64,000 nucleotides of DNA. It comes from Macrostomum lignano (Eukaryota). The translations under genes and the position numbers were made by a program. Each line of letters begins with the position of its first letter. Within the stretch, counting starts at the first letter, position 1. Location of the stretch: NCBI GenBank assembly GCA_002269645.1, contig NIVC01001245.1:1-64000 (forward strand), written 5' to 3'. The notes beneath the pieces were generated by a model that was not told the origin of the DNA, did no database searches, and saw only the letters and a program-made list of their open reading frames with translations. This document shows positions 916 through 59,627 of this stretch, piece after piece.

Positions 916-934
916 AACAGTCAGGACAGCTCAC

Positions 935-11146
<10,212 letters not shown>

Positions 11147-20858: not shown

Positions 20859-25692
<4,834 letters not shown>

Positions 25693-28725: not shown

Positions 28726-29740
28726 TAACAGCAACAACTTAACAACAAATTATGCAGCTAGCAATCAAAGTCACAGAGCAGGGTGCTTCAGATGGCGCGC
28801 CGCAGAGCCTGAGAGCGGAGGAAGTCCGCCCCGTTGGCAGTGTCGGGCGCCCTGGCGTCGCGTACGTAGGAGGCAGTCCACGTATCGACGGGTTTGGGCC
28901 TGACCCCGCCTGAGCGGGCCCTGCAGAGTGAGCAACAGGGCTAGGACGTCCTGAACAGGTTGGGGGCAGTAGCCCTCGGCCCGGATCACGTACGTGGCCC
29001 GCCAGTTGAAGTCGCCGCCGGCGCAGGATGGTGGACGGGCGCTGCAGCTTGGCCCGATCGTACAGGGCCTCAGTCCCGACGCTCTCATCAGCTCGAAAGG
29101 TCGCACGGAGCAGCCCTGAATGCGCCGAGTCCAGCTGCCGCTCTAAGCGTAGCCGTCAGTGTCCACGTCTCGGCGTTGTAGAGCACACCGCCTGCCACAG
29201 CCGACGAGCCCTCTGGCGGTCGGGCAGCGCTTCGGACTGGACGTCGGCTCGGATCGAACGGAAGGCCGCCCAGGCAAGTCCTCGGCGCCGCCGGATCGAG
29301 GTCCGTCCACGTGAGGCACCAGACCGCCGAGTAGGTGATCCCGCTGGTAGCGTGCGCGCGAGCGTGGTCATCTGCCCGTCTGCGAGGCGACATGTCAGGT
29401 CCGCTAGCGCTGGGATGTCGGCCGGCACAGTCAGCACCTAGGTCTTTAGCGTGTTGACAACCAGTCCGACGCTCAATGCCACCTTGACCAACCTGTCGAT
29501 CTGGCGGGATGCCACCTTGAACGGACGAGGACAGGAGGGCGAGTTCGTCGGCGTAGCCAAGCAAATAATAATAAGGCGCTTTTCACCGTGGCGGCGACCG
29601 ATGCGTCTGCGCAGCGCAGGAAGCCGTCGTTAGCCGAGGAGACTGCGGTCCGAAGCACCCAGTGGCAGCAGCACGAAGAGAAACGGCGCCAAAGTGTCGC
29701 CATGCAGAACTCCTGATGAAGTGTCGAACTGATGATGATT
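28726..29740 (-). mobile_element. 5'-truncated degenerate RTE-type LINE (3' half of RT)
   Basis: Minus strand FDTSSGVLHGDTLAPFLFVLL, LLGYADELALLSS, VLYNAETWTLTATL; decayed TTG tail; homologous to 37540-38430. Confidence 0.85.
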
Positions 29741-35507: not shown

Positions 35508-35962
35508 CTCTAAACCGTTAGCCAGTCTGCGCACTGTAGCTGGACCGAACTTACATTTTAACTGATGCTCTTTACAATTACAAAAAAAATGCGCTTCCAA
35601 TTTTTAACCACAACAAAGCTCTGTATTTTCTGCCCGTATCCTGCACACTTCCATGGCCTGTTAAAGTATACAGTCTGTTTTGTTTTTGTGAACACTTTTA
35701 AATATTTTTTATAACGGAGACAGCATTCAGCCTCTCAAACGTCCATTTTCAATGATTTAGCTTAAAAAATTGAGCCAACGCCGAAAGAGTTTATAAGCTA
35801 CGATCTCTGTTCAATTGGTGCTGTTTTTGTTCATGAAATACATCTCAACAATAGCTATTTGCTGGATTTAAGCAGTTTGAACAAAGTACATCGATGGGAA
35901 ATTTTGTCTTTCTTATTTTCAGTCATTTTATTTTATTTTCACACCCGTGCAAATATTGCTGA

Positions 35963-38891: not shown

Positions 38892-40507
38892 CTATACAGT
38901 TGGTTCTTTCAGCTGCCAAGTTTCAGCCAGCTCTCGTCTCAGCTTCTCGACACTCGCATTTAGCTGGGCGGTTAGTTGCTCAGCTTTCAACCTGAGTTCA
39001 GACTGCTCGCACAGCTTCTTGTATAGCCGCTCCTGCTTTCGTTTCTCCTCCATCAGTTTGCTGTCGAACTCGTCCGCGTGCTGTTCGAGCCGCTTAATCA
39101 ACTCGCCAATGGTGCCCTTCATGTTCAGCATCAGAGAGTGATCCTCCTCAGCTTGACGTTTGTACTCAGCTAAATGAATTTTCTGATTCTGACAAATTTG
39201 TTTGAATTCTTGTAGGCTTCGCTGCTTATTTTCCAGTTCCGTACGCTGATTTTTAATAGCCTCCTTGTACTCGTCGCATTGCTTTTTAAGTTGCGTTTGC
39301 CAAGATTTAATTTGGTGGTTCTCTTCTCGCAGCCGGTCCAGTTCTGTCTGCAGTTGCAGTTTGCTTGCTTCAAGGTCAGCTTTTTCTTGCGATAGTTGCT
39401 TCAACTGAGACTTGCTGTCATCTGCCGGGGGCTGAGTCTGATGCTCGTCAGAATGAATTGCTTTGGTCAGTCGATCATGGACCACGATCGTGGGAGGACT
39501 TTGTGGCATCACGCGTGTCTCAGATTCTTGACTAGAAGATAACGACGTTCGAGCCTGCAATTCACGGAAACCAGATTTGTTTCCATCTTGCGGGATGCTG
39601 GTTTTCGTGGAATTTGATTCTTTGCAGGAATCGTCTTGTGAAAGACGCTGGTCCCGAAGTTCTGAGAGCTTCAAATCACCAACCTGCGCATCCGTCATGT
39701 TCAGCTTCTTTTGAACTTCGTTCTGCTCTTCAGCCATTGTACAATTGTTTTGTTCCAATTCCTTCACAGGGGCTTCACTTTCCATACTCTTTATCCCTTT
39801 GTTGAAACGAGAATTTTCCTGTTCCAACTTCTCCATTTTCTGTTTTTCCTCTTTCGGCTCGTTAAGCAGACTTTCACTAAGAGTATCATCGCTTCCATCG
39901 TCCGCACAGTCCTCATGATTAATTTTATCTTCTTGTTTTGGCTTGTTCTGTCTAAAAAGTAGTTAATATCTCTTTGACCTTTAATATGCATACTGTTTGG
40001 ATCAGTAAATGGACGCAGAACTTACATGCCCTCGGATGACTCCAATGAATTTGATATACTCGTAGCAGAACATTGTTGTTGTGTCAACTGCCGATTAGGT
40101 TCGTTTACGCCTTCATGCTCTCTAAAAATCGAGTATCAAACTGGCAATATGCGTCAACTTCACAACAGTTAAACAATAACTACGACTACAAAAAACGACT
40201 AAGATCACAAAAAATCAAAAACAACCACGAAAATGGGCAAGAATCCACAAAAACATTCATGACGTCAAGACACACAAGAGCAGTAAGATACGGAAAGAAA
40301 CGAAAACAAATAAATGTTTATTAATTAAGCTAACTCATCAAAGAGGTCGACAAATAGACAAAAAATTAAACAAACAATTCAAAATATAGCGACTTACACA
40401 GAACTTGACTGAGAGTTTTGAAGGCTCTTAGATTGGCCCATAATTTGGGTTAACGATTTGATCAAATCAGTTTTTTCTTCGCTTTCAACTGTCACTTCTG
40501 CAGCCAT
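38892..40507 (-). CDS. Uncharacterised coiled-coil protein, cluster member A, 3 exons, ~421 aa
   Basis: Exons 40398-40507, 40026-40121, 38892-39951 (phase 2/2, frame continuous); paralogous to member B. Confidence 0.78.
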
Positions 40508-41429
40508 TCGCATTTATCAAGCTTATAGAAGGATGTTGAGATGCTGCAGGCAGAAAATTTATGTCATTGGACATTAGGTATGCTTAAATTTTCTATAAAA
40601 GATTAACTAAAAAGGGCTCTGCACCGCTCATTCGCCAAGCATTTATCATGGACACTGCAGCTACAATGCTAGATGGGTGAGAGATTTTGGGTTCGCAGCA
40701 TTGTAGTACATGTACATCTAAACTGGCGCTTCTTTTGTACATCTAAGAGCGCTCAGTGCGCTCAGTTTTGCGTTCAAATGGGTTTCCATAATTCTATTCT
40801 TCATACTCTCCTGTCTTTCCTGACTAATGTACTCCTAAGTTTCAAGGTACTGAATAAGGTACTGAAGCTCTGGATAGACTAGAAGATATGCATCAAAGAC
40901 TGAATGTATTGGTATGGTCGCCATTTTTTCATTCGACCTGTCTGAGCTAAACGGGTAACTGTTCCGAGCCACCCTAGAATTAAAAACTTTTGTGAAATAG
41001 AAGGTGCTGATAAGTTCTCATGTAGGTTTTGACCTTGTAACAGTCACTACTATTCATCTCTTAAGTAAAATGATGTTAAAAGCAAAAATCTGAACGCCAG
41101 CCATCTAGCCTGCATACCCTTTTGAGCTTTGGCTTTTAGCAATACCCCCATGCGCATTGAAATCTCAGAAATCCCCCTTCATGAGCCTTGAGATTTCAAC
41201 AATTCCCCTGCGCCGCATATTTTCAGCTACCTCCCCATGAGTCTAGGTACATGTACGAGTATCTCAGCAATTCCCCTATGATTTTTTATGGTTGACCGGA
41301 CCATACTTTTGTAATTGAACCCTAACTCTAAACATAACCAGTTAGTATATATTCCGGTGAAACATTTTAATTACTTGTACCGCTTTCGTCAGTCAAGTTG
41401 ATAGTCAAAGTCGAAAATCCCCATTGGCT

Positions 41430-41675
41430 GCCGCAGAACTGCACTCGGCCATAGACAATAAAGTCAATCAAAGCCACACTGCCACAGAACTGCACTCGGC
41501 CATAGACAATAAAGTCAATCAAAGCCACACTGCCACAGAACTGCACTCGGCCATAGACAATAAAGTCAATAAAAGCCACACTGCCACAGAACTGCACTTG
41601 GCCATAGACAATAAAGCCAATCAAAGCCACACTGCCACAGAACTGCACTCGGCCATAGAAAATAAAGTAAATCAA
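41430..41675. repeat. Tandem repeat, 51-bp unit, ~4.7 copies
   Basis: GCCACAGAACTGCACTCGGCCATAGACAATAAAGTCAATCAAAGCCACACT. Confidence 0.95.
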
Positions 41676-42189
41676 ACTGATAAAAATCCAGGTTTCACAA
41701 CTTTGGAACTTTCAGAGACTTTATTCCAAACCAGCCGTTTAAGAATCTCTCTCGCTCTCTGGTCAAACGACAATCAATTTGAAAATAGCAAACAAGTTTT
41801 TTTGGTTAACTACCTAAACTTGGTGCTGATTTTGAATGGAATTATCCACTTGATTGATCAACATGGTACACAGAATAATTGTTTTTGTTACATTCGTTTT
41901 TTCATTACTTCTCTATTTCAGGACCATAATGTATGCTTTTTATTCTCAGTGAAAAATAGTACCTATGTATAGCATGTCAAAAAACTATGTTATTATAGTC
42001 AAATTATAATACCACTAAAACGATTCATTTTTCGAAATATGTTGCTAGGTGCTACATGTCATCACCATCACATTGAAGATAGTCTTTTATACAAGAGGGA
42101 ATTTTTTTCAATTTCAAACCGCGAGGTCCTTTGAGGCATAATGGATTGGATGAAAAAAACAAAAATTTATTTCACATGCACTAATGGCC

Positions 42190-42456
42190 AGATGTGAAAC
42201 CGACAGCTCAGCCGCAGCTATTGCGCTGCGCATCTGAAGGCTGCGCACGGCTGTTCAGTCCAAGGACTGGGGGGTCGCCACACACAGCCTCAATTACCCC
42301 AGCTAATGCTGGCACCCATTTTACAGCTGGGTGAACTGAAGCAATGCAGAGTTAAGTGTCTTGCTCAAGGACACAAATTGTTCCAAGTGGATCCAGAATC
42401 GAACCTCCGACCTTTTAGTCGTGTGTCCGACGCTCTAACCACTAGACTACAACCCC
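42190..42456 (-). mobile_element. tRNA-derived SINE, most complete copy, with CORE-like central domain
   Basis: A box TAGTCTAGTGG, B box GGTTCGATTC, then TGTGTCCTTGAGCAAGACACTTAACTCT...CAGTTCACCCAGCTGTAAAATGGG. Confidence 0.85.
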
Positions 42457-42634
42457 TGCCTGATTAGATTAGATACTTGCCTAGCCTGGATACATCAGGG
42501 ATACTGTTCGTAACTATTCTAAAAAAAACTACTAGCTGTTGTCATAATGTTAAAATAAAAACAAAATTCACTTCTCATTTAAGTCGTTTTAATTAATCAT
42601 CGTTTTCAAGTGTTGACTACTTCAGCTCCCCGAC

Positions 42635-45600
42635 TTAAGCAGCTGCTTGCCGTACTCTAGCCAATTCGTCATTCAGTTTGATCAACTGTTGCGCCGCTTT
42701 CAACCTGAGATCAGATTGCTCGCAAAATTTCTTATAAAGCTGCTCCTGTTTTCGTTTCTCTGCCATCAGTTTGCTGTCGAACTCTTCGGCATGCCGACCC
42801 AGCCGATCGGTCAATTCGGCAATGGTGCTTTCCATTTCGCGAGCGCGTGCCACCGAGACGCTACTTCCCAGCTCGCTTTTGTACCGATCCATGTAGGTCC
42901 TCTGCGTTCTACAGATTTCTTTGAACTTCGCCAGCTCTTGTTGCGCGCTGCTGGACTTGGTGCGCTCCTTTTGAATTTCTTCCCTGCATTCGGTGCACTG
43001 CTTTTTCAGTTGGGCCTCCCACGACTTCAAACTATCGTTTTCCTTCTGTAATCTATCGAGTTCTGCTTGCAGCGCTAGATTTGTAGCTTTTAGTTCATCT
43101 ACTCGATCTTTCTTCTGCTCCATCTCTGACATGATATTCTGAGTAGCTTCTTTGGGTTGAGTGCACTGTTCTTTTAGTTGAGCCCCAGAAATTGTCTCTT
43201 GGAGTCGCTTCAATTCGACTTGTAGCTCAAGATTTTTTGATTCAAGGTGTGATACTTTGCCACTCTGTTGCTCCATCAGTGTCTTAATGTTCTGGATGGC
43301 TTCCATGTATTCAGTAATCTGCTCTTTCAGTTGTGTCTCAGATGATATTAACCTCTCGTTATCCTCCTGCAGTAGTTTTAAATGTTCTTTTAAAGCCAGA
43401 CCTGAGGCTTCAAGTTTAGCAACTTGACTATTCTGCTGTTCCATTTGAGTCTGTCTATCTTGAATATCTTCCTTGTGCTGTGCGCACTGCTCCTTCAGTT
43501 GAGCCTCAGACAACTTTAACCTCTCGATATCCTCCTGCAGTTGCTTCAGCTCTTCTTGTAGCTCAAGGTTTCTTGATTCAAGGCGAGTTACTTCGTCACT
43601 CTGTTGCACTATCAGTGTCTCGCTATTCTTGGTGGATTCCATATATTCCGTTATCTGATCTTTTAGTTGAGTCTCAGCTAATAATAAACGATTTTTATCC
43701 TCCTGCAGTGACTTCAGTTCTGTTTGTAGAGCCAGGTTCGTATTCTCAAGGTCAGCAACTTTATCTACCTGCTGCTTCATCAAGGAATCACTATTCAGAC
43801 TAGCCTGATTCACCTGTTCTTGAAGAGCTAGATTTTTTGCTTCAAGTTCAGCTATCTGCTTCACATGAAACTCTTGTTCAAATAGATGCTTTTCTTTGAG
43901 CTCTTCCATTTGTGTTTCCAATGACTTCAACCGATGGTTATCATTATACAGTTGCTTCACTTCTGCTTGTAGAGCCAGATTTTTTTCTGCAAGGTCCGCG
44001 ATTTGTTGTTGCAGCTGATCCATTTCAGACTCGCTTTTCTGAACATCTTTCTTGCATTGAAAGACCTGCTCTATTGCTTGTGCCTCGGAGGACTTCAACC
44101 GATCGTTATCTTCACGCAGTCGCTTTGATTCGTTTCCGAGAGCGAGATTTTTTGCTTCAACTTCAGCTAGCTGTTTTATAAGAGACTCGTGTTCAGAGGC
44201 TTGATCTTCTTTCTGTTGCTCCACCAGAGACTCGCCATTTTGAATAGCTTTTTGGTATTCGATGCACTGCCCTTTTAATTGGGCCTCCAATGACTTTAAC
44301 TGGTGGTAATTATTGTGCAACTGATCCAGTTTTGCTTGTAGTTTTAGGTTTCTTTCTTCAAGATTAGCTACTTGTTCCTTCTGCTGCTCCAGCTGAGTAT
44401 TGCTGCTTTGAATATCTTTCTTGTATTCAGTGATCCGATCTTCCATTTGAGTCTTTGATGACTTTAAAAAATCGTTGTCCTTCTGCAGTCGCTTCAGTTC
44501 TTCTTGCAGCTCAACGTATTTGGTTTCAAGTTGACCTACCTGTTCTTTCTGCTGCTCAATTACAGTCTTACTACCATGAATATCTCTTTGAAGCTTAGTG
44601 CACTGCTCTTTTAGCTGAGTCTCAGAAACTTTCAATTGATTGTTCTCCTCTTGCGATCGCTTCAATTCTTCTTCCACTTGATGTAGATCAACATTTTTTG
44701 ATTCAACGCGAGCAATTTGTTGCTTCTGTTGCTGGATCAAAGCCTCGCTATTATGGATATCTTCCTGCTGTTGAGTGCTCAGCTTTGTCAAATAAGCCTC
44801 GGTCGACTTCAACTGATTGTTATTCTCTTGTAGTCGTTGCATTTCTTCTTTTAGATCAACATTTTCTGCTTCAAGTTCACCTAGCTGCTTTGATAGACGT
44901 TCTTGTTCGTCTGCGTGTTCTTTCTGCTGCATTTCCAGGGACTCTATTTTCTGAATAGCGTTCTTGAATTCAGTTGACTGATCTGTTACTTGAGTATCCG
45001 ACGTCTTTAACCGATCATTTTCCGCTTGCAATCGCGTCACTTCAGCTTGTAGTTTCAGGTTTTTAGCTTCAAGATCAGCGACTTGTTCTTTCTGCTTTTC
45101 CTTTTGAAACTTGCCATCAACTGCCAGTTGTGTAGTCTGTTGCTCAGAATGAAAGGATTTTGTCAATTGCTTACGTCTTTCAATCTTCCCTAAGTTGATG
45201 GACATCGGCTCATCAGGATATTTTTCCACCTCACATCGCGAGGAAATACAAGCAGACATCATCACCTTCGGCATCTGTCTAGGATTGTCTTTGGTACAAC
45301 TCTGTGGATTCGGCTGGTTCATTTTAGGTCTCAGCTCGGCAGTTGGGACTAAGCTGCCCACATCGATATTAAGTCGCTTTCCAAGCTTCTTAGTGAACTG
45401 CATCGACTCGTCGCGTTGAACAGTTGAATCGCGTCGCAACTTTTCAGCTTCAGCTTCCATAAAGGATATTCTTGATTGCAGATCTTGAATTTTGCGGCTT
45501 TGCTGCTCCAGCTGGTAATCTTTCATTTTAAGTTGATTCTCGAGCTTCTCTGAAAGCTCCCTTAACGAATCAGATACTGCAGTGTCATTTCCTTCATCTC

Positions 45601-47279
45601 TTGCTTGTCTCATGGAATTCTGAGCATGCTGATTTTTTTGTCTTTGTCTAAAATGAAAAATAAGTGGAAGTATAGGTGATAAAATGCGATGACGCTGGGT
45701 TAAAAGTTAACCAGTGCAGCTTACTCGTACTCAAATGAGTCAAGGTTGCTCAATGCATCGGAAATTTTCTGCTTCGGCTCGTTCTCAGGCTGCTCGGTTC
45801 TAAAATATGAAATCTGAAATGAGTGAAACTCAATAAAACACGTCGAAACACTGAAAATTTTTGTTTTTGAAAACTGAGTTCCAAGAAACTGCGTTTCTTG
45901 ATATTTTTTTAAATTAAGCTAATGCAGATGTGAATCAAGTTTTATAAACTACCAGACCAAGTATTTTATGTTTTTAATTGCTCATTGTATGTCGGGAAGG
46001 TTTGAAATTGTTAAGCTAGTACTGTAAGTACGAAGCCCTGTATAATTTCTCTCATTTATCCGAAAATGGCAACTGTTTGCGGCTGTCTATCTGGATAGGC
46101 AACTGATTTTTCGGAAAAAAACTATATCAACTGTTTTTCACTAAAATTGAACTAATAAATAAGAAATTTTTAAGATTCGGTGAATGTGTCATGGCTAAGA
46201 GATTGCCGAATGCTAATAATAGTAGATGTGCAACCGACAGCTCAGCCGCAGCAATCGTGCATGCGGTGCATCTGAAGGCTGCGTACGGCTTTTCAGCCAA
46301 TGACTGGGGGGGGTCGCCACACACACCCTCAATTACCCCAGCTAATGCTGGCACCCATTTTACAGCTTGGCACAAATTGTTTCAGTGGGATAGGGAATCG
46401 AACCCCTTACCTTCAAGTCGCGAGTTCGACGCTCTAAAAACAAGGCTACAACCCCCTAATCAATGCTAAAGGAGATTAAATACTCGAAGAGTGATTTTTA
46501 TTAATGTAGTAGGGCATTATTTTAGGAACGGGAATTATTGTGGGTTCAAATATGCTTTTTGCCTACTATCAGTAGCTTCAGCCCGGGGAAATAATTAGAG
46601 TAGGGGAAAATCGCTAGTTTTGGGATTCCTTTAGAACTACATAGCAGTTGGGCTCTTGGGAAAGCATCTCCTCCCGTCCTCGGACATTTAACTTAGAAAA
46701 TTCACGAAAGGAAGTGTAAGAAGGGGAAGTAAAAGAAGGGATATAAATTAGGCTTGAACAGAGGAGTCTTGCCTCTAAAACTAATTAAGGGTCTTGCCCA
46801 GAGCACATAGGGAAATAGGGAGTTACTGTAAAAGAAGACCAACCTTTTGTACCGTAACATTTAATTACTTCTTTTAGTAAACTTGTTTTAACTAACTTTA
46901 TTGGTGTCCTGACTGAGTTCTTTAAGCCTAAAGCTAGAATTAGGGAACAGCAGGAACCTGGTGGCAGCGAACTACCAAAATCTCAAACCAGTAAACTCCA
47001 CTTAAAATCCTTAATATAAAACCAGTAGCCTAAACCGCGAGGTACACGGCTTGTCCATTAATGCTTGCATTTAAATAATATTGTGTATATTTCTATAACT
47101 TATATTGTTACATCATGTTATTGATACATTTACTACGGTCGTAACCGATTTTTATGAATTGGATTGAAAGCTACTTACCTTGCATCGAATAGTTGCAAAC
47201 TCGAACTGTTTAACTCTTTCAGCTGCAAACTTAATGATTCAAGGATGTCAGATTGGGAATCGCTGCTGTTATGGCTCAT
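42635..47279 (-). CDS. Uncharacterised long coiled-coil repeat protein, cluster member B, 3 exons, ~1062 aa
   Basis: Exons 47179-47279, 45725-45799, 42635-45647 (phase 2/2); 3-kb uninterrupted frame with ~13 repeats of ~56 aa. Confidence 0.85.
46213..46455 (-). mobile_element. tRNA-derived SINE, copy lacking part of the central domain (member B intron 1)
   Basis: Same head and tail as 42190-42456; ~40 bp of the CORE-like segment absent; ends in TACTATTATTAG. Confidence 0.82.
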
Positions 47280-47877
47280 TCCTAAGGCAGCGTCCTTGAA
47301 TCTTAGTGTAGTTTTAAAACAATATTTTGTCAATTCTATAGAACAGCTACGAAAGAAGACAGTCAACGGAGCAGTTTGTGTTTTAATTTATTTAACCCCG
47401 CTTTCTAAGTGTTATCTGGAGACAGTTTTAGCGTCAAAAACTATAGTTTTATGTGTACAACATTTTTTGCCTTTACAGACTGCACCGCCTTCTTTGAGTA
47501 CTTGTACACCTGTACTCGGTCGAATAGTTAAGCGGTTGGACCTGTTTGCTAACGCACATTATTTGAGCTTCTGTCTGCTTTGAGTAGACATTTTGACGCT
47601 GCAAAAGCAATGAACAAACTCGTTCGTTAATAGTTGCAATAGAAATTTGTGCAGTAATTTCGTTTCCACCTATCCATACTTACACCAAGTTAACCTCAGT
47701 GAGTACAAGAACAAGGTACGATGTGCGCGTACATTTTAACAAAACTGGGTGCTAACTCAAAAAGTGTCAATTTTTATTAATTGACAATTATAGTATGCAT
47801 GCAGAGAGCGTTGAGATACTGGTTCACAGTCGATGCTGGCTTTCCTGGAGCTTTTGAAGGATGTCCTGCGGGAACTT

Positions 47878-48490
47878 TCCTAGGGGCAGTGTTCTAGGGG
47901 CAGTGTCCTAGGGGCAGTGTTCTAGGGGCAGTGTCCTAGGGGCAGTGTCCTAGGGGCAGTGTCCTAGGGGCAGTGTCCTAGGGGCAGTGTCCTAGGGGCA
48001 GTGTCCTAGGGGCAGTGTCCTAGGGGCAGTGTCCTAGGGGCAGTGTCCTAGGGGCAGTGTCCTAGGGGCAGTGTCCTAGGGGCAGTGTCCTAGGGGCAGT
48101 GTCCTAGGGGCAGTGTCCTAGGGGCAGTGTCCTAGGGGCAGTGTCCTAGGGGCAGTGTCCTAGGGGCAGTGTCCTAGGGCAGTGTCCTAGGGGCAGTGTC
48201 CTAGGGGCAGTGTCCTAGGGGCAGTGTCCTAGGGGCAGTGTCCTAGGGGCAGTGTCCTAGGGGCAGTGTCCTAGGGGCAGTGTCCTAGGAACAGTGTCCT
48301 AGGGGCAGTGTCCTAGGGGCAGTGTCCTAGGGGCAGTGTCCTAGGGGCAGTGTCCTAGGGGCAGTGTCCTAGGGGCAGTGTCCTAGGGGCAGTGTCCTAG
48401 GGGCAGTGTCCTAGGGGCAGTGTCCTAGGGGCAGTGTCCTAGGGGCAGTGTCCTAGGGGCAGTGTCTTAGGGGCAGTTTCCTAGGGACAC
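47878..48490. repeat. G-rich minisatellite, 14-bp unit GTGTCCTAGGGGCA (~43 copies)
   Basis: Near-perfect tandem array. Confidence 0.97.
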
Positions 48491-48926
48491 TGTCCTGAAG
48501 GCACCGTCCTCGGAATATGAGTGTTTCGAAATGCCGTATTGTCACAGAGTCGAAAGACACTTTCATAGGCCCGAAATTTCAAAACGCTAGAGTACCACCA
48601 ACCCGAAATTATACATCGTCGCTGTAAAAGGTCCTGCTACATCTTTAAGCTCTATTTACGCAAAATGGCTTGTCATAAATTTAGACTAGGATAGGTTAAA
48701 TAACCGCATAAGTCAAAATTTTTTATCAAAACAGAGATTTATAGCCTAGTGTTGAGCGGCAGTAAAGAAAAACTACTACGTTTGTATTTGATCATTAAGA
48801 CACGTTTTTCAAAAAATTCATTGATAATAAAATAACCAGTAATTTAATTTTTATTTAATATTAAAAACATCCCTGAAATTTGCTATTCGCCAGATAAGCT
48901 TGTAATTTCCACAGAAAAATTATCAT

Positions 48927-50004
48927 TTACAAGTTGCCACCACCACCAGGCGGTCTCATGGAGCGATGTTTGTTAAGCAGATCGTTTCCGGACTGGTAAT
49001 TATTGAGCTGCTCCTGGCCAGCCAAGTTCTCAAGCAGGGTGTTGACTCTTTCTCTCAGCGTGTGGACCTCATCAGTCAGATTCGCGATTTCGCCATCTTT
49101 TCGAGGCAGCTCTTGCTTGAACCATCCGATTGCTTCCTCAGCCTGTCTCAGTTTCCCCTGAGCCTCCGTCAGCTGCGTGTTCAACTCGTGCTCTCTAGTC
49201 AGCATTTCGGTCATTGTCCGCTCCATACCCGAGTAGTCATTGCGCAGCTTTGCGTGCTCAAGCTTCAACTGCTCCAGCTCGGTATGAGCAGTCGCCGATT
49301 TGCCCAACTCTTCTTCAAGCCTCTGACGCATCTGCTCGGCCACTTTGATGAGGTCATCGCGCTTCTTATTGGACTCGAGCAGCTGCTGTCTGAGGCTTTC
49401 AACTTCTCTGGTTTCATCATCGGAAGTGCTCTGCGATACTAAAGCATTGCTCCCAGGATCCACTGAACCGCCATTTGCGTTGCCGTCATCCATGTCCAGA
49501 CGCTGTCGCAGCTGCTCTGCCAGCTCCAATGCTTCATCTCGCTGCTGACTCAGGCTTCGAGACTTCTGCTTCTGCTTCTCAATCTCGGCTTCCAATGAGG
49601 ATATCCGAGCTTCTAGAGTCAGCAGTGTGCGAGACTGCTCTTCCAGTTGCATGTCCTTGAGCCTGAGTCTCCGTTCGAATTCGAATATCTCCTCCAACTT
49701 TTGCTGGGTGTCATTTGTGTGCGCTCTTAGACTGAAAATCGAATTTCTAAGAAGTTAAAAAGCTATTCAATTCGGCTTTAAGGTCGCAGAGAAAAGTTCA
49801 GTAGTGATAGCAACTATCTCACTTACCTTGAATCAGATTGCAGCTTTGTACACTCCTTCCGCAGCTGCTCGAGTCTAAAGAGTTGAATGAGTCATAATAG
49901 AAAAGAAATCACTAGAAAATGAAGGTATATAAATAAAATTTAACTCACTGAGATTTCATCAGGTCATTCGACTGGGTCAACTGGCTCACCAGTGATTCAA
50001 TCAT
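48927..50004 (-). CDS. Uncharacterised coiled-coil protein, cluster member C, 3 exons, ~302 aa
   Basis: Exons 49949-50004, 49827-49874, 48927-49731 (phase 2/2); LRLKDMQLEEQSR..RISSLEAE..QRDE matches the N-terminal block of member B. Confidence 0.75.
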
Positions 50005-50432
50005 CCTCCTGTTATGATTTGTGTAAGTCAAGTCTTTCAAACTTTCAAAAATGATAGAACACAGTCGGTATTGGTAGCTGAGTTTGTGCAGACTTTTTAT
50101 GCTAGTGGGTGCATTCCTAAAGTGTATACATGAAAAAAACAAAATAATTCCGGCAAAGTTCCTTTTTAGCCTTAGTTTTTGACGTGTACGTTATCTACGA
50201 GTACATTGTTGTACAGCCAGGGTCCAGTGCAGGGTAGAAGAAACTCTGTCTTGTACACTGTTCCATACGGAGTACACTGTTCCATTGCACACTGGTACGT
50301 CTGTATCTGTCTATGCATTCTACCCAATACTTCGAAACTCAATAAATTGTACTTTATACGAGCTAGCATTTTGCTGGAAACGAAAGCTTTATTACATGTA
50401 TACTCGTATACTGTTTAGTGAGCTGTTAAGTC

Positions 50433-51100
50433 GGTTTACCCCCTATTCGCCGAATTCCGATTTGCCGATTCCCAGCTCGCCGAATCCTGATTCGCCGATT
50501 CCTGGTTCGCCGAAATTCCCGAGTCGCCTATTCCCGATTTGCCGAAATTCCTTATTTGCCGAAATTCCTCATTTGCCGAAATTCCTCATTTGCGAGTCCC
50601 GACTTGCCGATTTCCTGATTCGCCGAATTCCCGACTCGCCGAATTCACTATTAGGCCAATTCGTACTACGTCGAATCTCTGGTAATGCCTGTGGCCTGTG
50701 CTAGCTAATAGATAAGCCATTCTTTGTTCGAACCTTGTGTATATTTTGCTTGTTTCATTCACTCTACTATTTCTTAGTGACTTTACTAATACTAATACTC
50801 AAGAAATAATAGAGTAAATGATAACAAGCAAAAATGTACAAAACGTTCAAGAAAAGAATGGAGCCACAGGCACAGGCATTACCAGAGATTCGACGTAGTA
50901 CGAATTGGCCTAATAGTGAATTCGGCGAGTCGGGAATTCGGCGAATCAGGAAATCGGCAAGTCGGGATTCGGCAAATGAGGAATTTCGGCAAATCAGGAA
51001 TTTCGGCAAATCAGGAATTTCGGCAAATCGGGAATAGGCGAATCAGGATTCGGCGAGCAGGGAATCGGCAAATCGGGATTCGGCGAATCGGGGGTAAACC
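50433..51100. mobile_element. Foldback-type MITE, 668 bp, ~240-270-bp inverted arms built of ~10-bp subrepeats
   Basis: Ends GGTTTACCCCC / GGGGGTAAACC; 8-bp TSD GTTAAGTC at 50425-50432 and 51101-51108. Confidence 0.92.
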
Positions 51101-51823
51101 GTTAAGTCAACCGCTCTGCCAATACTCTGGGGTGGCGGTCAGGCGCTGCAGTAAGTCAGTCAGCAGTCCAGTTTGAAAATCCGAAAAAAGTAATTTAACG
51201 CATTGACAGAAAAAAACGAGTGAAGTGACATTCCAAGTGTAATTTCCTGTTTTCATCTGACCGAACATAAAGGAAAATGTATTTTAAAATATCATATCTG
51301 CTACGAAGGCACAAAAAATCCTGTGATTTGGATTTGGAACACTTTCTGCTTGTAAGTCTAAAAATAACAAGCAAAACCGAAATTCAACAGCTTCAGACGT
51401 CGCAAAAAAGGGTTTTTCTTTAAAGGATATTTAAAGGATTACGACTTCAAAACATCGTCTTGATTGTGGCATTGTGATTCTAGCAACAAAATTGTTTCCC
51501 GCATTTAATTACGAGTATTTGTCGCAGTCGATAGATATAAATAAATTAAGAGATTTGTATAAGGATGGTTCCAAACAAAAGTATTTACAGATAGCACATA
51601 TATGTGTAGATTTTTCTGCCTTTTCTTTTCCCAAAAGATTCTGGTTCCAGAGTAAATGTTCATGAGTAGCCTCATAATGAACTGCAGATAGACAGTGCAT
51701 CTCTGACTTTTCAATCGAAAACATCCTTAAAGAAACCGGAATAACTTAGTCGGATGAACACGAACAGAATTGATGTTTTAAGATTGTCAGCCAAGATTGT
51801 AAGTTTTCTTGAGTAGCCCCGAG

Positions 51824-54230
51824 TCAGTGAGCATTTTGCCCAATGACAGTTGATGAGTTCAGTTCATCACAGAGTCGTTGACGCACGTACTTAAATGTCT
51901 CAACGACGTTACCAAGTCGTCTTTTGACTTCAAGCAGCTGCTGCTTCAGTGCATCCATTTCTGTTTCCAAGTCATCCGAACAATGATGAAGTTCATCTCC
52001 CACTTCCTGCGATTGTTGAAGGCGTTCAGCCGACAGCAGCAAGAGTTGGACTGCCTGTTCTAGACTATTCTGCACCTGAAACAGTTTTGTTTTCACCTCC
52101 TGTTTTCTAGAATGCGTCGCCAAATGCTCAGCCGATAATTCACTATCATGTCTCATGACATCATTGTTTTCGAATTTTCCCCTTGTACTTTCCGGCCTAA
52201 AAGTCTGAGCAGAGGGTCCACAATCAGTTGTATGGAAAAGCAACGCAGCTGCTCGTCGCATCCTATCTTGGGTCGAATGCAACTGACGTTTATTGCGTTC
52301 CAGTTGCACCTTCAATGCAACAAGTTCCTTCTCGCATTTCTGTCTAAGATTCTGATGTTCGCAAACTTTCCCGTATAGCTCATTCTGAATTCTCTTCGCT
52401 TCCTTCAGCCTGTTGTCCGACTCTTCAGCATGGCGGTTGAGTCTTTCATGCAGAGTGGCGATTGTATGATTCAGTTGTCGCTCCAGAGTAGTCTTTTGAT
52501 CAAGGTTCTGTGTAGCTTTATTCAGCTCATCCTGCAGCTCGTGGTTTTTCTCGGCCATATTTTCAATCTTGGCTTGAAGTTGCTGAATCTTTTCTTCACT
52601 ATCGCGGCATAGCCTGCTATGTATCAAATTTAACTTTTGCTTTTCTAAGCAAACCTGCGTCAAATCTTTTTGAAGATTTCGACACCTAATTTCCAGCTCC
52701 GTCAAAACTGAGTCCTTATCTTTAAGCTGGCTTTCTAGCAACAGTATAGACTCTTTACTTTGGTTTAGGAATCTAGTTTGAGCTTCATAGTTCTTCCATA
52801 GCCCAGTGAACCTGTTTTCTAATTCACCAGCAACCGACCGGGCCTCCGTTAATTCTGCTTGAATTCTGCTCTCCGAATTTTTTTGCTCAACAAGGGCCAA
52901 CGTCTTTTCCTTAACTTCGGTCTCCAGCGATTGCTTTAGCTTATTTGCATTAACAAGAGCCTCATCTTGCTTTTCAAATTCTGTCAATAAACTGTTGAAT
53001 TTTTTCCTCAACTCTTCAAAATTCTGCTCAGAAACTTTATTCACGTCACTGAGAGTCTGCAACTGAGATTGAAGCATTTGATTTTCCTTTCTCAGCTTCT
53101 GTGCGGTCTGCTGTAAACTCTGTTTGGCAGTTTCCAGTTTTTCCATAGCTTGAGTCATACGATCTATCTTTGACTCCAACGACGTCTTGGCCTGACGACA
53201 TTGATGAAGAGCCTCCTCTCGCTCCTTAAGCCGTGCAACTAAGTCCGTATTCCTCTTGTTTAGGGCTTGACTATTTTTGAGCAGAGTATTGTTTTCTCTT
53301 TCTCTTTGACTGCTGAGGCCTTCGAAGTCTCGTCTCAGCTGCTGCTCAGAGGCTGCCTTGGCTTCCAGTTGAGTCTTGCTGTGGTTCAGAGCCTCTTGTA
53401 GTGCATCGCACAACTGATGCGAATCTGCCAGTTTGGCATTTGATTGCTCGGCCATGGCTTGAGCTTCCTCAGCATTTTTTCTGCTCTCATCACATTGGGC
53501 CGACAAGTCAGCTATATGAGACTTCAGTAGCTGATTTTCCTGAGTCAACTGTTTCAACTGTTTTTCAAAGTTTTGCTTTGAAGCCTGCAATGTGGTCACT
53601 TGCCAAGTTTCGCGCTTCAACTGGGATTCCAGTGAGCCGTTGATGTGTTTTATTCTTTCAAGTTCCTTCAATTTATTTTCCATTTTATTAATGCACTGCT
53701 CCATTTCTAAGCATTGAGCCTTCAATCCGTCTCGCTCTTGTCGAATTCGTGACAGGCATTCGTGCTCTGTTGATTCAACTGTCTCGGTGGCCACTTCTTT
53801 CATTGATGGAATTGAAATGTCGATTGGTTCCTCCGCAGATGGCCTGAAAATCAGCCATCGTTGGTGAAAAACAATAGTTTCAAAAGTAGAATTAATTGCA
53901 CTTTTATTCAAATGTGAAAAGAGACTTAGATAAGGTAGACTAATGCAAAAAACTTACTCAGAATCCCAAGGCCCTGGTGAGGAAGACGTTCTGCTGAGCC
54001 TAAGGTAGTAAAAAAGCACATATTAACAGAATTAACTACACAAAAAAATTCATAAACAATACGCTGACACAACATTTACTAGATAATTCAACCAGTAAAA
54101 CTCACAAGGTGGTGCTGATGCCAGGTTCTTCCGGTACTATATCGCCATCAAAAAGCTTTACAAGCTGAATGGTTAATGAGTCAATCCTGTCTAATAATTC
54201 TGATCCATGATTTGCACAGCTGGAGCTCAT
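51824..54230 (-). CDS. Uncharacterised coiled-coil protein, cluster member D, 3 coding exons, ~728 aa
   Basis: Exons 54106-54230, 53958-53999, 51824-53843 (phase 2/2); contains RLNRHAEESDNRL..KRIQNELYGKVCE motif shared with A and B. Confidence 0.82.
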
Positions 54231-54732
54231 GCTACTCAAAGTGCCGCTTTGAAAGTTTGAAGAACCGACTGCCAAATTCTTAATACAGTATTCTCTCGCG
54301 TGGTTTAGCGGTTTGGGGTAGTTCGTGTATCCGCGTATCGTATGAATTTTCGCTGGTCTGGGACTAAATTAATGTGTGAATTGTACATATATACTGTGTT
54401 TTTTAATGTACGAGAATCTCTACCTTAAAACTGCACTGCGGTGACTCATAAGTACAGAGCCAGTACAATCACACGCAATTCCACACACTGAGCGAGCCGT
54501 ACCAGAAAAGAATAAATTTAGTTTCTTATCAATTCAGTTTCTTAGTAAATTTCATATTGTTGTTAAAAGTTAAAAGTTGCTTAAAAATTATGTTGTGTCC
54601 TAAACAAAATATGAAAGATAGTTCGTAACTTTTTTTGCTCCAAACAGACAGTCAATAAATTTATTTCAAAAACGAAAAAATTAAATGCAAAATGCGTGCG
54701 ACCTCCAATCTTAGAAAAGTGAAGGAAAACAC

Positions 54733-55165
<433 letters not shown>

Positions 55166-56715
55166 GCGTCGCTTGGCTTTTAATGTCTCGGCCACAGTCC
55201 GTATATTTAATTTTTATGACGCAAGTACGAGCATTTATAGAATAAGCACAGCAAAATTACTTGAATGACTTAAGCGACACAGTATTTTAAATAAATTTGG
55301 TTGCATTCCTGGAAACAAGTATATCCTTTAGACTTTTCTATAAAAATGAAACCCAGGGCTTAGATGCGTCGATGGCTTTATAGCCATCTTAATCTTTCTT
55401 TGACGATTCGAGCTGACACTCGAGCTTGATGATGGCGCGTCACAGCTGCCCGTTTACCTTTACCTTCTGAAAAAAACCTTACCGCTTCGCCTCAGAGCCT
55501 ATTCTTAAACCTGGCATGCTGTCCTCAACTATCGCACTTTTTACGATTTCTTTGCTTGACCTAACACCAGTTTATAGCAGCTTTCTTCTGAGTTTGAACA
55601 CTCTTGCAGCGATTGTTTTTTTACCTGCTTGATTTCAGTGAAAGCCTCATTTTTAGCGCTAAGTTTCAATGTCAAGATCGCATAATTTCCTTCGAGTCTT
55701 GCACTTTCAGCCAGAGTTCATGCTTACCCTCAAGATGCTGCATGTGATGTGTTCCTTATTACCCGACTTTCGATAATCAAGGAACAATCACTTCTAGCTC
55801 AGTAGCTAGGCCACCCAGTAAGTCAACAGAAGGTATTCAATTACCTTGAGTCCTTATGAGATAACTCTTCAATGTTGATCTCGGGTAGATCTCGTCTGTA
55901 GTCTCTTCTGACTGTCGCTCGTAGGTCGGGTCCGAGTCTTCTTTCTTTCTTCAAATAGTTCCGGCCGGATTCTGTTGCTCGGACCAATGGGAAGCTTCCA
56001 AATTAACAATGGGATCCCTGCGCCAAACTGCGGTTTGAATTAAGCCTCCTTCTTCTAGCAAGTCTCGATTGACTTGGTGATCAGGAAGTCCTCCTAAGGC
56101 TTCCTCTTCGGAGCTTCTCCTCTCGTCGGGAGTTGGCTCCTGGTCCGCTTCGGACCGCTTGTATTTATAGGCGACTTTTTTTATCCAAAATAGCAACATT
56201 ACAATTCACGTGTTGCGCTAAAAGGGGAAAATGGCTCATGGCGTATTTTTCTGGTAACATCTTTTCCTGGTAGCTTGATTCATTCAAAGCTTTAGGCGCA
56301 CATGCGTGTACTACTTACTTATAGTAGCATTATACGATTATCTTCTTTTTACCTTTTTAACGGGAGGTAGAACACTCTACACATGGTCTCTTGAACTTCT
56401 CGGCATTAGCGAGGGACTTTTTATCCCACTTGCTGTATTGGCATCAGTGTTGCTAGGAGTATCGAAAAATTCTGTTCACTGCATTCGGTCAATGTTCCAA
56501 CAAGCCTGCAGGTTGGAAGCTTTGTGTCACAGAGGGCACAGGGAAAAAATCTGCAAAATGAACGCAGAAATACAAAATTTTTGTAGGTGCAGCCAACGAA
56601 ATCATTTTCTGACGCTAAAATCGATGACTGAGAAGCCGGTCGGACGCTTTCCTGCCAAGCCGCATGTGAGTCTTAAAACGTTTGATTGAACAACAACAAT
56701 GGGTGGTTGGGCCTT

Positions 56716-57027
56716 GGCGACGCCCCTGAGTTTGACCATAAAGGCCCAACCACCCATTGTTGTTGGCAGCAGGGACATGTGTCCCCCCCCCCAGTGAAGG
56801 CTATGGGGAAGGTGATAATGCTCTTCTCTGTGTAAAGCAATAATTTTGTTTCAGGGCGCTAAAATATTGAACCTACGGTGCTAAAATGAGTGCCTGCGAT
56901 GCCAAAATGAGCGCTGACAACACCGGTTCTCAAAAAAATGTACATAGTAGAAATTTAGTCATGTACATGTATGTGTACAATTCATTGCTTTGTCCCCCCC
57001 CCCATAAAATCCATGGCGACGCCCCTG
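56716..57027. mobile_element. hAT-like MITE whose left end is inverted
   Basis: Right end GGCGACGCCCCTG + GTCAAACT (57015-57035); left TIR plus the same 8-mer appear reverse-complemented at 56716-56736. Confidence 0.75.
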
Positions 57028-58084
57028 GTCAAACTTTCTAAAGAGGGGACGGATGTACATGTACGCCAGAACACCAACCGAGTGGAAAGCCTGGCAGGAC
57101 GCCAGAAGAAAGTTAGGCTAGCTTCATGCTCCCACTTAGCTCCAGGAGTTCACACTGTCTACTTAGATCAGACTGGTTTGAACTTGTGGACCCGGAGGTC
57201 GCATGGCCGGGTCGGCTCGTGCAGACCACCCATTAAAGTGCATCGTGACAAACTGGAGTTACGGAGTTTTTATTTATTCATTCTGTTATTCAAAGGGGTG
57301 GAAAACGCAGCAAATGTTTTAGGGCTTTTAAGACCTCCTAGCAGACCGCTGGCACCATCTGCGACTCGAGTGAAAGGCGGCTGAAGCTGTTAACTCAGCA
57401 GTCATTGCTTGACACGCGCGCTAAAATGTCTATGGCTAAAACAATTTGCATTGTCACTGTAAAATTAAGTTAGACATTTAAGTTAGACAGCTAGTGAAGC
57501 GACTGAGATCGAGTAAGCTTTCAATAAATCACCTTGAGCGTAGAAAAGACCCATCAAGCTGGCCACAATATTAGGTTGCTATACAAGATATATGGGAACC
57601 ACAGAACTTACAGTTCTGTAGTGGGAACCTTCCCCCGACCATATTTTAAACCCCCTTAAGAATTTCGCACTATAGCTAGTCCTGATATTGAGTTTCTGTG
57701 TTCTAGCAACCAATTTGTTTCGGGCAAATGGCTATTTGAAGCCTTGGCTAGAAATAAGAATCTAAGAAATCTAAAAATCTAAGAAAATATTAGAATAAGA
57801 GATTGCGAAGATAATTTCCAACAAATTTGTTTACAGATAAAAAATATTCTGTAGACTTTTATGTTTTCCCTTTTGCTTCAGATTCTGGTTCCGAAGAAAA
57901 ATACTCATGAAAAGCATCATAAAGAACCGCAGTTACACGGTGCATCTTCGACTTCTCAATCGAAACAGTCATTAAAGAAACAGGAATGCAACAGCCAGAT
58001 AAAATGGAACAGGATTAAAGTATGTTGATTTTAAGCCAGATATCAACAAATTTGATTCAAAAAACAAGTTTTCTTAGTTGCACC

Positions 58085-59627
58085 TTCACAGCAACAAGTT
58101 ATTGAGTTGAGTACTTCGTTGAGTCTTTCATGCAGAACGGTGATTGTATAATTCAGTTGTCACTCCAGTGGTACTACTTTATACAGCTTAGCCTATAGCT
58201 CATGGCTTTTCTTTGTCACAAGTTCAGCACTGGCTTGAAATAAGTTGCTGAATATTCTTCACTATCCAGATCGATCACTTGACTCGAACTTTCAAATTAC
58301 GATGGAATACAACTTGACCTTCCCTTTTCTTTTGTCAAATCTTTCTCAACATTTTGAGGCCCAGATTCAATATCTGCCGAAACCGAATCCTTATCTTTAA
58401 TCTGGGTTTCTTGCAATATTATCGACTCTTCGCTTTGGTTTAGAGGTCTAGTTTGAGCTTGAAATTTCGTCGACAGCACCGTGAATCTGTTTCCCATTTC
58501 ATCAGCGACCGACTGGGCCTCCTGCAACTGAGATTGGAGCATTTGATTTTCCTGTCTCAGCTTCTGTGTGGTCTGCTGTAAACTCTGCTTGGCAGTTTCC
58601 TGTTTTTCCATAGCTTGAGTCATACGATTCGTCTCTGATTCTATAATGACCTATTGGCCTCACGAGATTGATGCAGAGCCTCCTCTTGCGCCCTGAGCCG
58701 TGCAAATAAGACCATATGACTCTTTTCTTCGATGTCTCGCCTCAGCTGCTGCTCAGAGGCTGCCTTGGCTTCCAGTTGAGTCTTGTTGTGGTTCAGAGCG
58801 TCTTGCTGTGCATCGCACAATTGCTGCAAATCTGCCAGTTTAGCATTTGATTGTTCGGTCATGGCTTGAGCTTCCTCAGCTTTTCTTCTGCTTTCGTTAC
58901 ATTGTGCCGACAAGTCAGCCAGCTGCGACTTCAGTAGCTGATTTTCCTGAGACGACTGTTTCAACTGTTTTTCCAAGCTTTGCTTTGAAGCCTGCAGGTT
59001 GGTCACTTGCCAAGCCTTGTTCTCCAACTGGGATTCCAGTGAGCCGTTGGTGTGCTTCACTTTTTCAAGTTCCCTCAATTCGTCTTGCATTCGATTGATG
59101 CACTGCTCCAGTTCTAAGCATTGAGCCTTCAATCCGTCTCGCTCTTGTCGAATGTGTGACAGGCATTCGTGTTCTGTTGATCCAACTGTCTCGGTGGCCA
59201 CTTCTTTCGTTGGTGGAATTGAAATGTCAATTGGTTCGTTCAACGATCGTCTAAAAATGGGCCAACGTTTGTTTAAAATTAAAAATTTGAAGAGTAAATT
59301 TAATTGCATTAATTAAGTTGCAAAAAGGGGTAGACCAATGCAAAAAATGTACTTAGAGTCCGGTTGCTCAGATGAGGAAGCCCTGTCGCTGGGTCTGAAA
59401 GTTAATTAATGCATTAACAGCATTAGTTACAAAAAAACTCCATTTACGGATGATACGGCTGATGGAACTCTTCGCGTACTGACTAGTACAACGAGTAAAA
59501 CTCACAAGGTGCCGATGCCAGATTTTGCCGGCGCTCTCTCGCCATCAAAAACCTTTACAAGCTGAATGGTCAATGACTCAATCCTGTTTAATAAATCTGA
59601 TTTATGATTCGCACAGCTGGAACTCAT
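58085..59627 (-). pseudogene. Decayed duplicate of coiled-coil member D (member E)
   Basis: Exons 59506-59627, 59353-59394, from 59250 onward align with D; premature TAG at 58641-58643 with frameshift, two internal deletions, fragmented 3' part. Confidence 0.82.

Follow-up and report, generated by a model that had tools for sequence, protein, structure and literature searches.

The closest described counterparts of the genes considered here are the GenBank hypothetical proteins PAA70370.1 and PAA70371.1 of the flatworm Macrostomum lignano, which were annotated one by one and without a family link. These two entries are genes B and C themselves of a tandem array of five genes, A to E, for putative coiled-coil proteins, located in the first 64,000 nucleotides of contig NIVC01001245.1 (assembly GCA_002269645.1); this whole stretch is referred to below as the window. 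Among named proteins, CCDC150 (the human Q8NCX0 family) is likewise a long coiled coil without other domains, and its function is poorly known. However, phmmer revealed no similarity between it and D, and A to E form a tandem multi-copy array of modular blocks that appears to be restricted to Macrostomum. Tropomyosin, CEP63/Deup1, golgins, SYCP1, the myosin tail and intermediate filament (IF) proteins resemble A to E in having heptad-periodic helices rich in E, Q, K and L, with repeat number setting the length of the rod. In Pfam and PDB, such generic coiled-coil scaffolds gave only weak scores with the family, none of them at threshold, and unlike them A to E possess no IF rod-end motif, head or motor domain, membrane anchor or GRIP domain.

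Another point of comparison is the Mlig-sperm1 family (Mlig020950), which is also taxon-restricted, multi-member and without known domains in M. lignano (PMC5816591). It is specific to free-living flatworms and is needed for normal sperm, which indicates that families of this type can be reproductively essential (PMC5816591). Its gene ID differs from those of the array, PMC5816591 makes no mention of coiled coils, and the analogy is one of kind only. Mlig-sperm1 was therefore rejected as the identity of A to E, there being no evidence that links the two.

A to E probably encode intracellular coiled-coil proteins of the alpha-helical type, a taxon-restricted family that arose as a tandem array and would act as scaffold rods, and we regard this reading, taken as a whole, as reasonably probable. 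What is new is the description at the level of the family; the genes were mostly known already as 'hypothetical proteins', and the array is otherwise an ordinary set of orphan coiled-coil genes.

Structure and composition of the array

The gene models were rebuilt from the window DNA upstream of each long minus-strand open reading frame (ORF) and were assembled by script. The genes lie in the order E-D-C-B-A, all on the minus strand, at 38892-59627 of the window, and no further family member was found between 59.7 and 64 kb.

Gene A, minus strand: exon 1 at 40513-40398 (or from the ATG at 40507), micro-exon at 40121-40026, last exon at 39951-38892; 423 amino acids (ATG 40513) or 421 amino acids (ATG 40507).
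Gene B, minus strand: exon 1 at 47279-47179, micro-exon at 45799-45725, last exon at 45647-42635; 1062 amino acids.
Gene C, minus strand: exon 1 at 50004-49949, micro-exon at 49874-49827, last exon at 49731-48927; 302 amino acids.
Gene D, minus strand: exon 1 at 54230-54106, micro-exon at 53999-53958, last exon at 53843-51824; 728 amino acids.
Copy E, minus strand: exon 1 at 59627-59506, micro-exon at 59394-59353, last exon from 59250, with similarity to D down to ~58118; a degraded D-like copy.

A common plan underlies all five: a short exon 1, an in-frame micro-exon (96, 75, 48, 42 and 42 nucleotides in A to E, respectively) and a giant last exon. Both introns of every gene are in phase 2 and of the GT-AG type, with gtaagt, gtgagt or gtacat donors and pyrimidine-rich (t)nag acceptors. 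In addition, exon 1 encodes the motif [DE]-[LI]-[LI]-x-[SR]-[LI]-x-S-L-x-x-Q-[LI] in 5/5 genes (DLIKSLTQI, DILESLSLQL, MIESLVSQL, LLDRIDSLTIQL and LLNRIESLTIQL). An earlier note, made from the DNA alone, had described five minus-strand genes with products of 421, 1062, 302 and 728 amino acids plus a pseudogene E; the rebuilt models reproduced all of these figures, and the short first exon, symmetric micro-exon, giant last exon and phase-2 introns that it had listed were seen in every member.

The product of B is identical to PAA70370.1 (BOX15_Mlig010330g1; 100% over 1062 amino acids), and that of C, encoded on the same contig, to PAA70371.1 (BOX15_Mlig031124g1; 100%, 302 amino acids); the spans of both coding sequences coincide exactly. 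Gene A has no GenBank model on contig NIVC01001245.1, and its copies on two other contigs are annotated. These sister models, PAA70358.1 (94%) and PAA83440.1 (90-92%), are RNA-seq-derived, align with A from end to end, the 96-nucleotide micro-exon included, and begin two codons upstream, at 40513, giving the 423-residue form. The A-, B- and C-type copies on the two sister contigs are represented by PAA70358.1 (Mlig026644g1), PAA83440.1 (Mlig020877g1), PAA70357.1 (Mlig003505g1) and PAA70356.1 (Mlig031789g1) and show 90-97% identity to the window genes. The GenBank annotation of the Mlig_3_7 assembly was built purely from RNA-seq and transcriptome evidence, using StringTie/TACO, a de novo transcriptome and TransDecoder (PMC5730564). 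Since the models of B and C are identical to GenBank models derived from RNA-seq and transcriptome evidence alone, and the sister models of A have the same origin, at least genes A, B and C are transcribed. Transcription, on which the earlier note had made its account of A to D depend, was confirmed in this way for A to C only.

The ORF of D is intact (728 codons) yet unannotated in GenBank. The sole D-like protein in the databases is UniProt A0A1I8G9K9 (76%), a prediction from the older ML2 assembly in which two D-like copies are fused and the micro-exon is skipped. Because of this skipping and the absence of GenBank models, open frames and canonical splice sites are the only support for the 42-nucleotide micro-exons of D and E. 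Exact look-ups in a collection of 15 billion proteins were made with 11 alternative products, comprising A of 423 and 421 amino acids, D of 728, micro-exon-skipped A, C and D, forms of E and sister-contig forms of D, and none was in the collection. The genes had been called unrecognized in the earlier note; this applies to D and E, which are unannotated, and not to B, C and the sister copies of A, which are already GenBank hypothetical proteins, and automatic names exist in UniProt.

Pairwise BLASTP of the five products showed that the paralog blocks form a mosaic. A and B share 30% identity in the N-terminal region and 50% over the last 153 residues (E=1e-39), and the C-terminal block of A and B matches that of D with ~45% identity over ~60 residues (E=1e-10 to 1e-12). 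Residues 94-184 of B correspond to residues 53-145 of C (37% over 94 residues, E=1.5e-12), and residues 137-182 of C correspond to the extreme tail of D, D677-722 (37% over 46 residues, E=1e-5). These significant matches, at 37-50% identity, agree with the earlier description of blocks that are shared yet strongly diverged. The C-terminal block has the consensus TI..L..RL..HA.E.D..L...KR.Q..LY.K.C....LR.K, with 20 columns that do not vary in the alignment of A-, B- and D-type sequences, and is missing from C. Gene A consists of the N-terminal motif, a Ser/Glu/Gln-rich linker, a single 56-residue repeat unit and the C-terminal block; in B the 56-residue unit, with the consensus QQ..QVA.LE.KNL.LQ.ELKRLQEDN.RLKSSETQLKEQ.TE.KE.IQN..T..E., is repeated in tandem. 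The 168-nucleotide units of B are only 62-76% identical to each other at the DNA level, and the expansion is therefore not recent.

42656-42841 (B), ~39122-38943 (A) and ~52489-52295 (D), minus strand: C-terminal block, from the alignment and BLASTP.
42944-45097, minus strand: 56-residue repeat array in the last exon of B, ~12 tandem units of 168 nucleotides or 8 heptads each, aligned with MAFFT.

Counting the B/C block, the 56-residue unit, the C-terminal block and the D/C tail as shared blocks, 5/5 members combine the three-exon plan, two phase-2 introns, an in-frame micro-exon and the exon-1 motif with at least one shared block. Copy E is 80-86% identical to D in nucleotide sequence over its first 1.2 kb (blastn/tblastn). 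It carries at least two frameshifts and two internal deletions and has no sequence past D codon ~525. Its last exon starts at 59250 and meets a stop at 58641, after which similarity to D continues in other frames to 58118; the C-terminal block is largely gone, and a residual ORF of 257 codons remains.

The proteins have a high content of E, Q, K and L, whereas P and G are scarce. A hydrophobic period of 3.3-3.8 residues was dominant in 44-46% of the 28-residue windows of B, C and D and in 27% of those of A, compared with 10-13% in shuffled sequences. AlphaFold2 predicted the C-terminal 173 residues of A as one continuous helix of 167 residues with a predicted local distance difference test (pLDDT) score of 94. 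Heptad periodicity and long unbroken helices, the two features that define the coiled-coil class, were thus both found, and the proteins may oligomerize. A Foldseek search with the predicted helix gave no match, as expected for a bare helix, and is uninformative on function. By sequence inspection, the N-termini are hydrophilic and none of the members has a signal-peptide-like or transmembrane-like N-terminus, so the proteins are presumably cytoplasmic or nuclear; the C-termini are also hydrophilic and carry no transmembrane anchor. A role as a secreted adhesive or glue protein or in seminal fluid was considered and rejected, as no member has a hydrophobic N-terminal signal sequence.

Database relatives, sister copies and selection

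An exhaustive phmmer search was performed with D (728 amino acids) only, against 1.84e9 cluster representatives from a library described as drawn from public genomes and metagenomes. At E<=0.001 it returned only two matches, one D-like and one B-like, both from M. lignano. In word-indexed searches of a 5.8-billion-protein database, D matched M. lignano only, and A matched only its two M. lignano copies. The alignment of the C-terminal block returned nothing at E<=10 with the same tool, known members included, and is uninformative rather than negative; word-indexed negatives obtained with coiled-coil queries call for caution, since known members were missed. Relatives outside M. lignano thus appear to be undetectable in the databases searched, in line with the lineage specificity that had been proposed.

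A Pfam scan of the last-exon products of A to E found no model at gathering score, and the sub-threshold matches were to generic coiled-coil families, including FPP and ATG16. Tropomyosin (PF00261) reached 21.9 bits with B and 10.2 bits with C against a gathering score of 38.6, and CEP63/Deup1 (PF17045) reached 19.7 bits with C (E=7.9e-4) against a gathering score of 33. Even at E<=1, the scan listed neither the IF rod (PF00038), Myosin_tail_1 (PF01576) and SMC_N/hinge models nor SCP-1, and no match was seen to GOLGA2L5 (PF15070), GM130, GRIP, GRAB or any other golgin model. PDB searches with the D, C and B sequences and with a C-terminal-block profile gave nothing significant. With the profile, an unrelated Hsp70 fragment ranked at the top, and SYCP1 C-terminal fragments ranked second and fourth with non-significant values (6f63, E=0.05; 4yto, E=0.63). 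In the sequence searches run here, no significant full-length match to a conserved family emerged, and the absence of any resemblance to myosin, tropomyosin, lamin/IF, golgin or SMC proteins, first judged from motifs, was upheld at these thresholds. UniProt/UniRef gives the D-like model A0A1I8G9K9 the automatic name 'Coiled-coil domain-containing protein 150' and a 343-residue C-like model the automatic name 'GOLGA2L5 domain-containing protein'. Because phmmer with D retrieved M. lignano only and no Pfam family reached threshold, both names appear unsupported by the searches run here, and neither should be relied on. In the literature searched, no account was found that treats these genes as a family or mentions their common exon plan, their repeats or the unannotated D and E, and a search for Macrostomum together with coiled-coil found nothing relevant.

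M. lignano is described as neopolyploid (PMC10733133). Contig NIVC01001246.1 carries the same E-D-C-B-A array at ~97% nucleotide identity to the window. C-, B- and A-like copies are found on a third contig, NIVC01000419.1, where the order B-A-NYD-SP28-FBXL is seen. On all three contigs the array is followed by a convergent NYD-SP28 gene and an F-box/LRR gene.

33469 to ~35400, plus strand: NYD-SP28 gene ('Sperm tail' Pfam domain), convergent with the array and kept beside it on three contigs.

We take the NYD-SP28 domain to mark subunits of the nexin-dynein regulatory complex. The B-like copies on NIVC01001246.1 and NIVC01000419.1 have broken reading frames; in one of them 1 bp is missing from the micro-exon, another 1 bp is inserted and ~147 nucleotides are deleted, and the other has a frameshift in mid-exon. 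These interruptions account for the truncated B-like GenBank models of 479 and 535 amino acids and may be either real lesions or indel errors of long reads. The ORF of D is intact in the NIVC01001246.1 copy as well, the two D copies differing at 45 sites, and copy E has the same truncated structure on the sister contig. The 42-nucleotide micro-exon of D (53958-53999 against 6787-6828 of L004, on NIVC01001246.1) is only 88% identical between the copies, with 3/14 residues changed, whereas the flanking introns are 98-99% identical, which is odd for a neutral and for a constrained segment alike. Conversely, exon 1 (40398-40513) and the micro-exon (40026-40121) of A are 100% identical in nucleotide sequence in the three genomic copies, with zero synonymous changes, whereas elsewhere in the gene the copies differ by 4-8%, which points to gene conversion or to constraint at the RNA level. 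The structure of gene C appears to vary between copies. Its introns (49827-49948 against 10278-10629 of L004) are both without counterpart in the sister contig NIVC01001246.1, where the C-like model has 320 amino acids and is marked 'partial', and the C-like ORF of the third contig has a different C-terminus after '...EEELGK'.

Nei-Gojobori estimates of omega, the ratio of nonsynonymous (dN) to synonymous substitution rates, were obtained by comparing the window with the sister contig copies.

A versus NIVC01001246.1: 18.5 synonymous and 25.5 nonsynonymous changes, dN 0.026, omega 0.34.
A versus the third contig: 22 synonymous and 33 nonsynonymous changes, dN 0.034, omega 0.37.
B, 3' half, versus the sister contig: 16.5 synonymous and 27.5 nonsynonymous changes, dN 0.029, omega 0.41.
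C, last exon, versus the sister contig: 1 synonymous and 11 nonsynonymous changes, dN 0.018, omega above 1, not significant.
D versus the sister contig: 18.5 synonymous and 26.5 nonsynonymous changes, dN 0.016, omega 0.38.
E, residual ORF, versus the sister contig: 8 synonymous and 12 nonsynonymous changes, dN 0.028, omega 0.39.
NYD-SP28, segment 1, versus NIVC01001246.1: 5 synonymous and 3 nonsynonymous changes, dN 0.007, omega 0.15.
NYD-SP28, segment 2, versus NIVC01001246.1: 1 synonymous and 1 nonsynonymous change, dN 0.003, omega 0.24.
NYD-SP28 versus the third contig: 7 synonymous and 0 nonsynonymous changes, dN 0, omega 0.

The A, B and D proteins evolve several-fold faster than that of the neighboring NYD-SP28 gene and are under net purifying selection. 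The family had been called fast-evolving, and the dN values of 0.016-0.034 with omega of 0.34-0.41 in A, B and D, compared with a dN of 0-0.007 in NYD-SP28, bear this out in the sense of moderately relaxed purifying selection; positive selection was not demonstrated. Within A, in the comparison with the third contig, exon 1 and the micro-exon showed zero changes, the disordered linker had an omega of 0.48, and the C-terminal coiled coil with the C-terminal block had an omega of 0.15. The C-terminal module is the most constrained part, as judged from this last value.

Origin, proposed role and rival readings

The exon plan, intron phases, exon-1 motif and block mosaic shared by A to E indicate that the five genes go back to a single three-exon ancestor that was duplicated in tandem. 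As judged from the alignments, B subsequently expanded the 56-residue unit to ~12 copies, C lost the C-terminal block, A and B lost the D/C tail block, and E decayed. The earlier proposal of birth and death fits the tandem duplicate pair D/E with its degraded member, the interrupted B-like frames on the sister contigs and the expanded repeat of B.

The proteins would form long dimeric rods. By our own arithmetic, the rod of B would measure ~100 nm, from ~720 helical residues at ~0.15 nm per residue. The N-terminal amphipathic motif and the ~60-residue C-terminal block would serve as common end modules, which are proposed to join the rods to one another or to a single shared partner structure, and the paralogs would then provide rods of differing length for use as scaffolds, tethers or spacers. 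As for the cell type, the male germline or the sperm cytoskeleton is our guess, held with somewhat less than even confidence. It is drawn from a general pattern in M. lignano and from that alone: flatworm-specific genes are described as over-represented among germline-enriched genes (PMC5816591), and fast evolution of reproduction-related genes is described in Macrostomum (PMC7336406). There is a small chance that the array encodes components of a cytoskeletal structure peculiar to Macrostomum, such as part of the elaborate sperm (bristles, shaft or feeler) or another lineage-specific organelle. Paralogs with different numbers of 56-residue units would then act as molecular rulers that set its dimensions, and turnover of copies and repeats would track morphological evolution under sexual selection.

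Several points weigh against the reading of A to E as a taxon-restricted family of intracellular rods. The oligomeric state, the polarity of the rods and the docking of the end modules are pure inference. The number of substitutions behind the sister-contig comparisons is small, at 12-55 per gene, and the identity of exon 1 and the micro-exon of A in three copies makes gene conversion among copies likely. The direct searches of the large databases covered D, exhaustively, and A, with the word-indexed tool, which did not list B; the orphan status comes from the searches run here, and remote homology might still show at the profile-profile level. D and E have no transcript-based GenBank model on NIVC01001245.1 or NIVC01001246.1, and no spliced product of either was found by exact-sequence look-up in the 15-billion-protein collection. 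Finally, no expression, localization or phenotype was found when the gene IDs Mlig010330, Mlig031124, Mlig026644, Mlig020877, Mlig003505 and Mlig031789 were sought in M. lignano full texts and supplements, the supplements being partly covered.

The missing models of D and E also bear on the extent of the array that is alive. If D as well as E were untranscribed or decaying, only A to C would be functional, and the absence of RNA-seq-derived models on both contigs and of the predicted products from the protein collection, together with the frameshifted and truncated E and the broken B-like frames of the sister contigs, is what such partial death would leave. However, a missing GenBank model is weak evidence, because the annotation dropped transcripts that overlap repeats and those below 0.5 reads per kilobase per million mapped reads (PMC5730564). 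The 728-codon ORF of D and its canonical splice sites are kept in two copies that differ at 45 sites, 18.5/45 of these changes are synonymous against 21% expected, and the omega of 0.38 is below neutral, as is also seen in the residual ORF of E (0.39; 8 synonymous and 12 nonsynonymous changes); moreover, long-read assembly errors may account for the 1-bp indels of the sister B copies. We consider the death of D unlikely for these reasons, while leaving it a real minor chance.

The other rival readings would assign the family to a known class. Very divergent orthologs or paralogs of the metazoan centrosome-associated CCDC150, acting at centrosomes or basal bodies, could explain the UniRef name of A0A1I8G9K9, and human CCDC150 is a long coiled-coil protein that co-localizes with gamma-tubulin in mitosis (PMC6788831); the best Pfam match of C, weak and under the cutoff, is to CEP63 (E=8e-4). 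However, the phmmer search with D, in whose library CCDC150 orthologs are assumed to be present, found nothing outside M. lignano, the GenBank annotators kept the A, B and C types as 'hypothetical', and a relative of C has been given another automatic name, GOLGA2L5. With coiled-coil proteins, such names are often due to similarity in composition. The chance that the family is CCDC150-derived is slim. Proteins of the SYCP1 type diverge beyond sequence recognition while keeping their coiled-coil length, and A to E, being coiled-coil, fast-evolving and lineage-restricted, could on that basis be functional analogs of SYCP1 in the meiotic chromosome axis or the transverse filaments of the synaptonemal complex, as the matches of the C-terminal-block profile to 6f63 and 4yto might hint. 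Those E-values are non-significant and stand below an unrelated Hsp70 fragment, no Pfam SCP-1 match appeared at E<=1, and five paralogs of 302-1062 amino acids with variable repeat number fit a length-constrained transverse filament poorly, which makes this reading very improbable. Golgin-like vesicle tethers can be given hardly any credence either. Golgins are typically long coiled-coil rods that vary in length, and the name GOLGA2L5 on the C-like UniProt model points the same way, but no GOLGA2L5, GRIP or GRAB match at E<=1 and no C-terminal transmembrane anchor was found in A to E, and the searches with A and D located homologs in M. lignano alone.

The interpretation as a taxon-restricted rod family, which we hold to be the reasonably probable one, makes the array a neat illustration of the growth of such a family, in which genes duplicated in tandem, an 8-heptad unit multiplied, blocks were lost and copies decayed. 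Taxon-restricted genes form a large and poorly understood share of flatworm genomes, and the function of the array is directly testable, M. lignano being amenable to RNA interference, in situ hybridization and transgenesis. In addition, the Mlig_3_7 annotation gains from the present models two members that it lacked, D and E, and one copy, A, that it had left unannotated.

Other features of the window

The spacers and one intron of the array contain repeats. The paired arrays in the D-C spacer may be a foldback element or resemble a miniature inverted-repeat transposable element. The repeated element in intron 1 of B and the B-A spacer looks like a short interspersed nuclear element (SINE), and ARAGORN found no tRNA in a scan of the region, the SINE-like element included.

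54731-55165: (ACT)n microsatellite of ~144 copies between E and D, with poly-Ser, poly-Leu and poly-Val pseudo-ORFs.
50441-50646 and 50920-51092: arrays of 15/17/32-bp repeats (TTCGGCAAATCGGGAAT-like) in opposite orientation, ~270 bp apart, in the D-C spacer.
47878-48496: 14-bp satellite TCCTAGGGGCAGTG between genes C and B, with ~44 copies that are 97% identical.
46130-46381 (B intron 1) and 42211-42351 (B-A spacer), minus strand: repeated element, both copies translating to AVKWVPALAGVIE.VCGDPP, with a tRNA-like sequence, 'ggttcgattccc', immediately upstream of the copy at 46130-46381.

Outside the array, the window contains retroelements and exons of an RNA polymerase gene. Both the degenerate reverse-transcriptase element next to A and the non-long-terminal-repeat (non-LTR) retrotransposon are missing from the sister contig, the former with contiguous flanks there and the latter as an insertion of ~5.8 kb with flanks.

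35905-38425: GC-rich (~66%) degenerate reverse-transcriptase element between the NYD-SP28 gene and A, with ORFs at 36638-38128 and 37665-38216 and a weak RVT_1 match.
~29028-29564: fragment seemingly related to the element at 35905-38425.
21224-25665, minus strand: apparently intact non-LTR retrotransposon with a 1150-residue ORF for endonuclease, reverse transcriptase and RNase H, preceded by a 329-residue ORF1.
1-11042, minus strand: exons of an RNA polymerase largest-subunit (Rpb1-family) gene.
~6700-9770: very long CT/GC-rich microsatellite-like tract that splits the Rpb1-family gene, with 'LSACLTAC'/'LSVCLSVC' ORFs on both strands.

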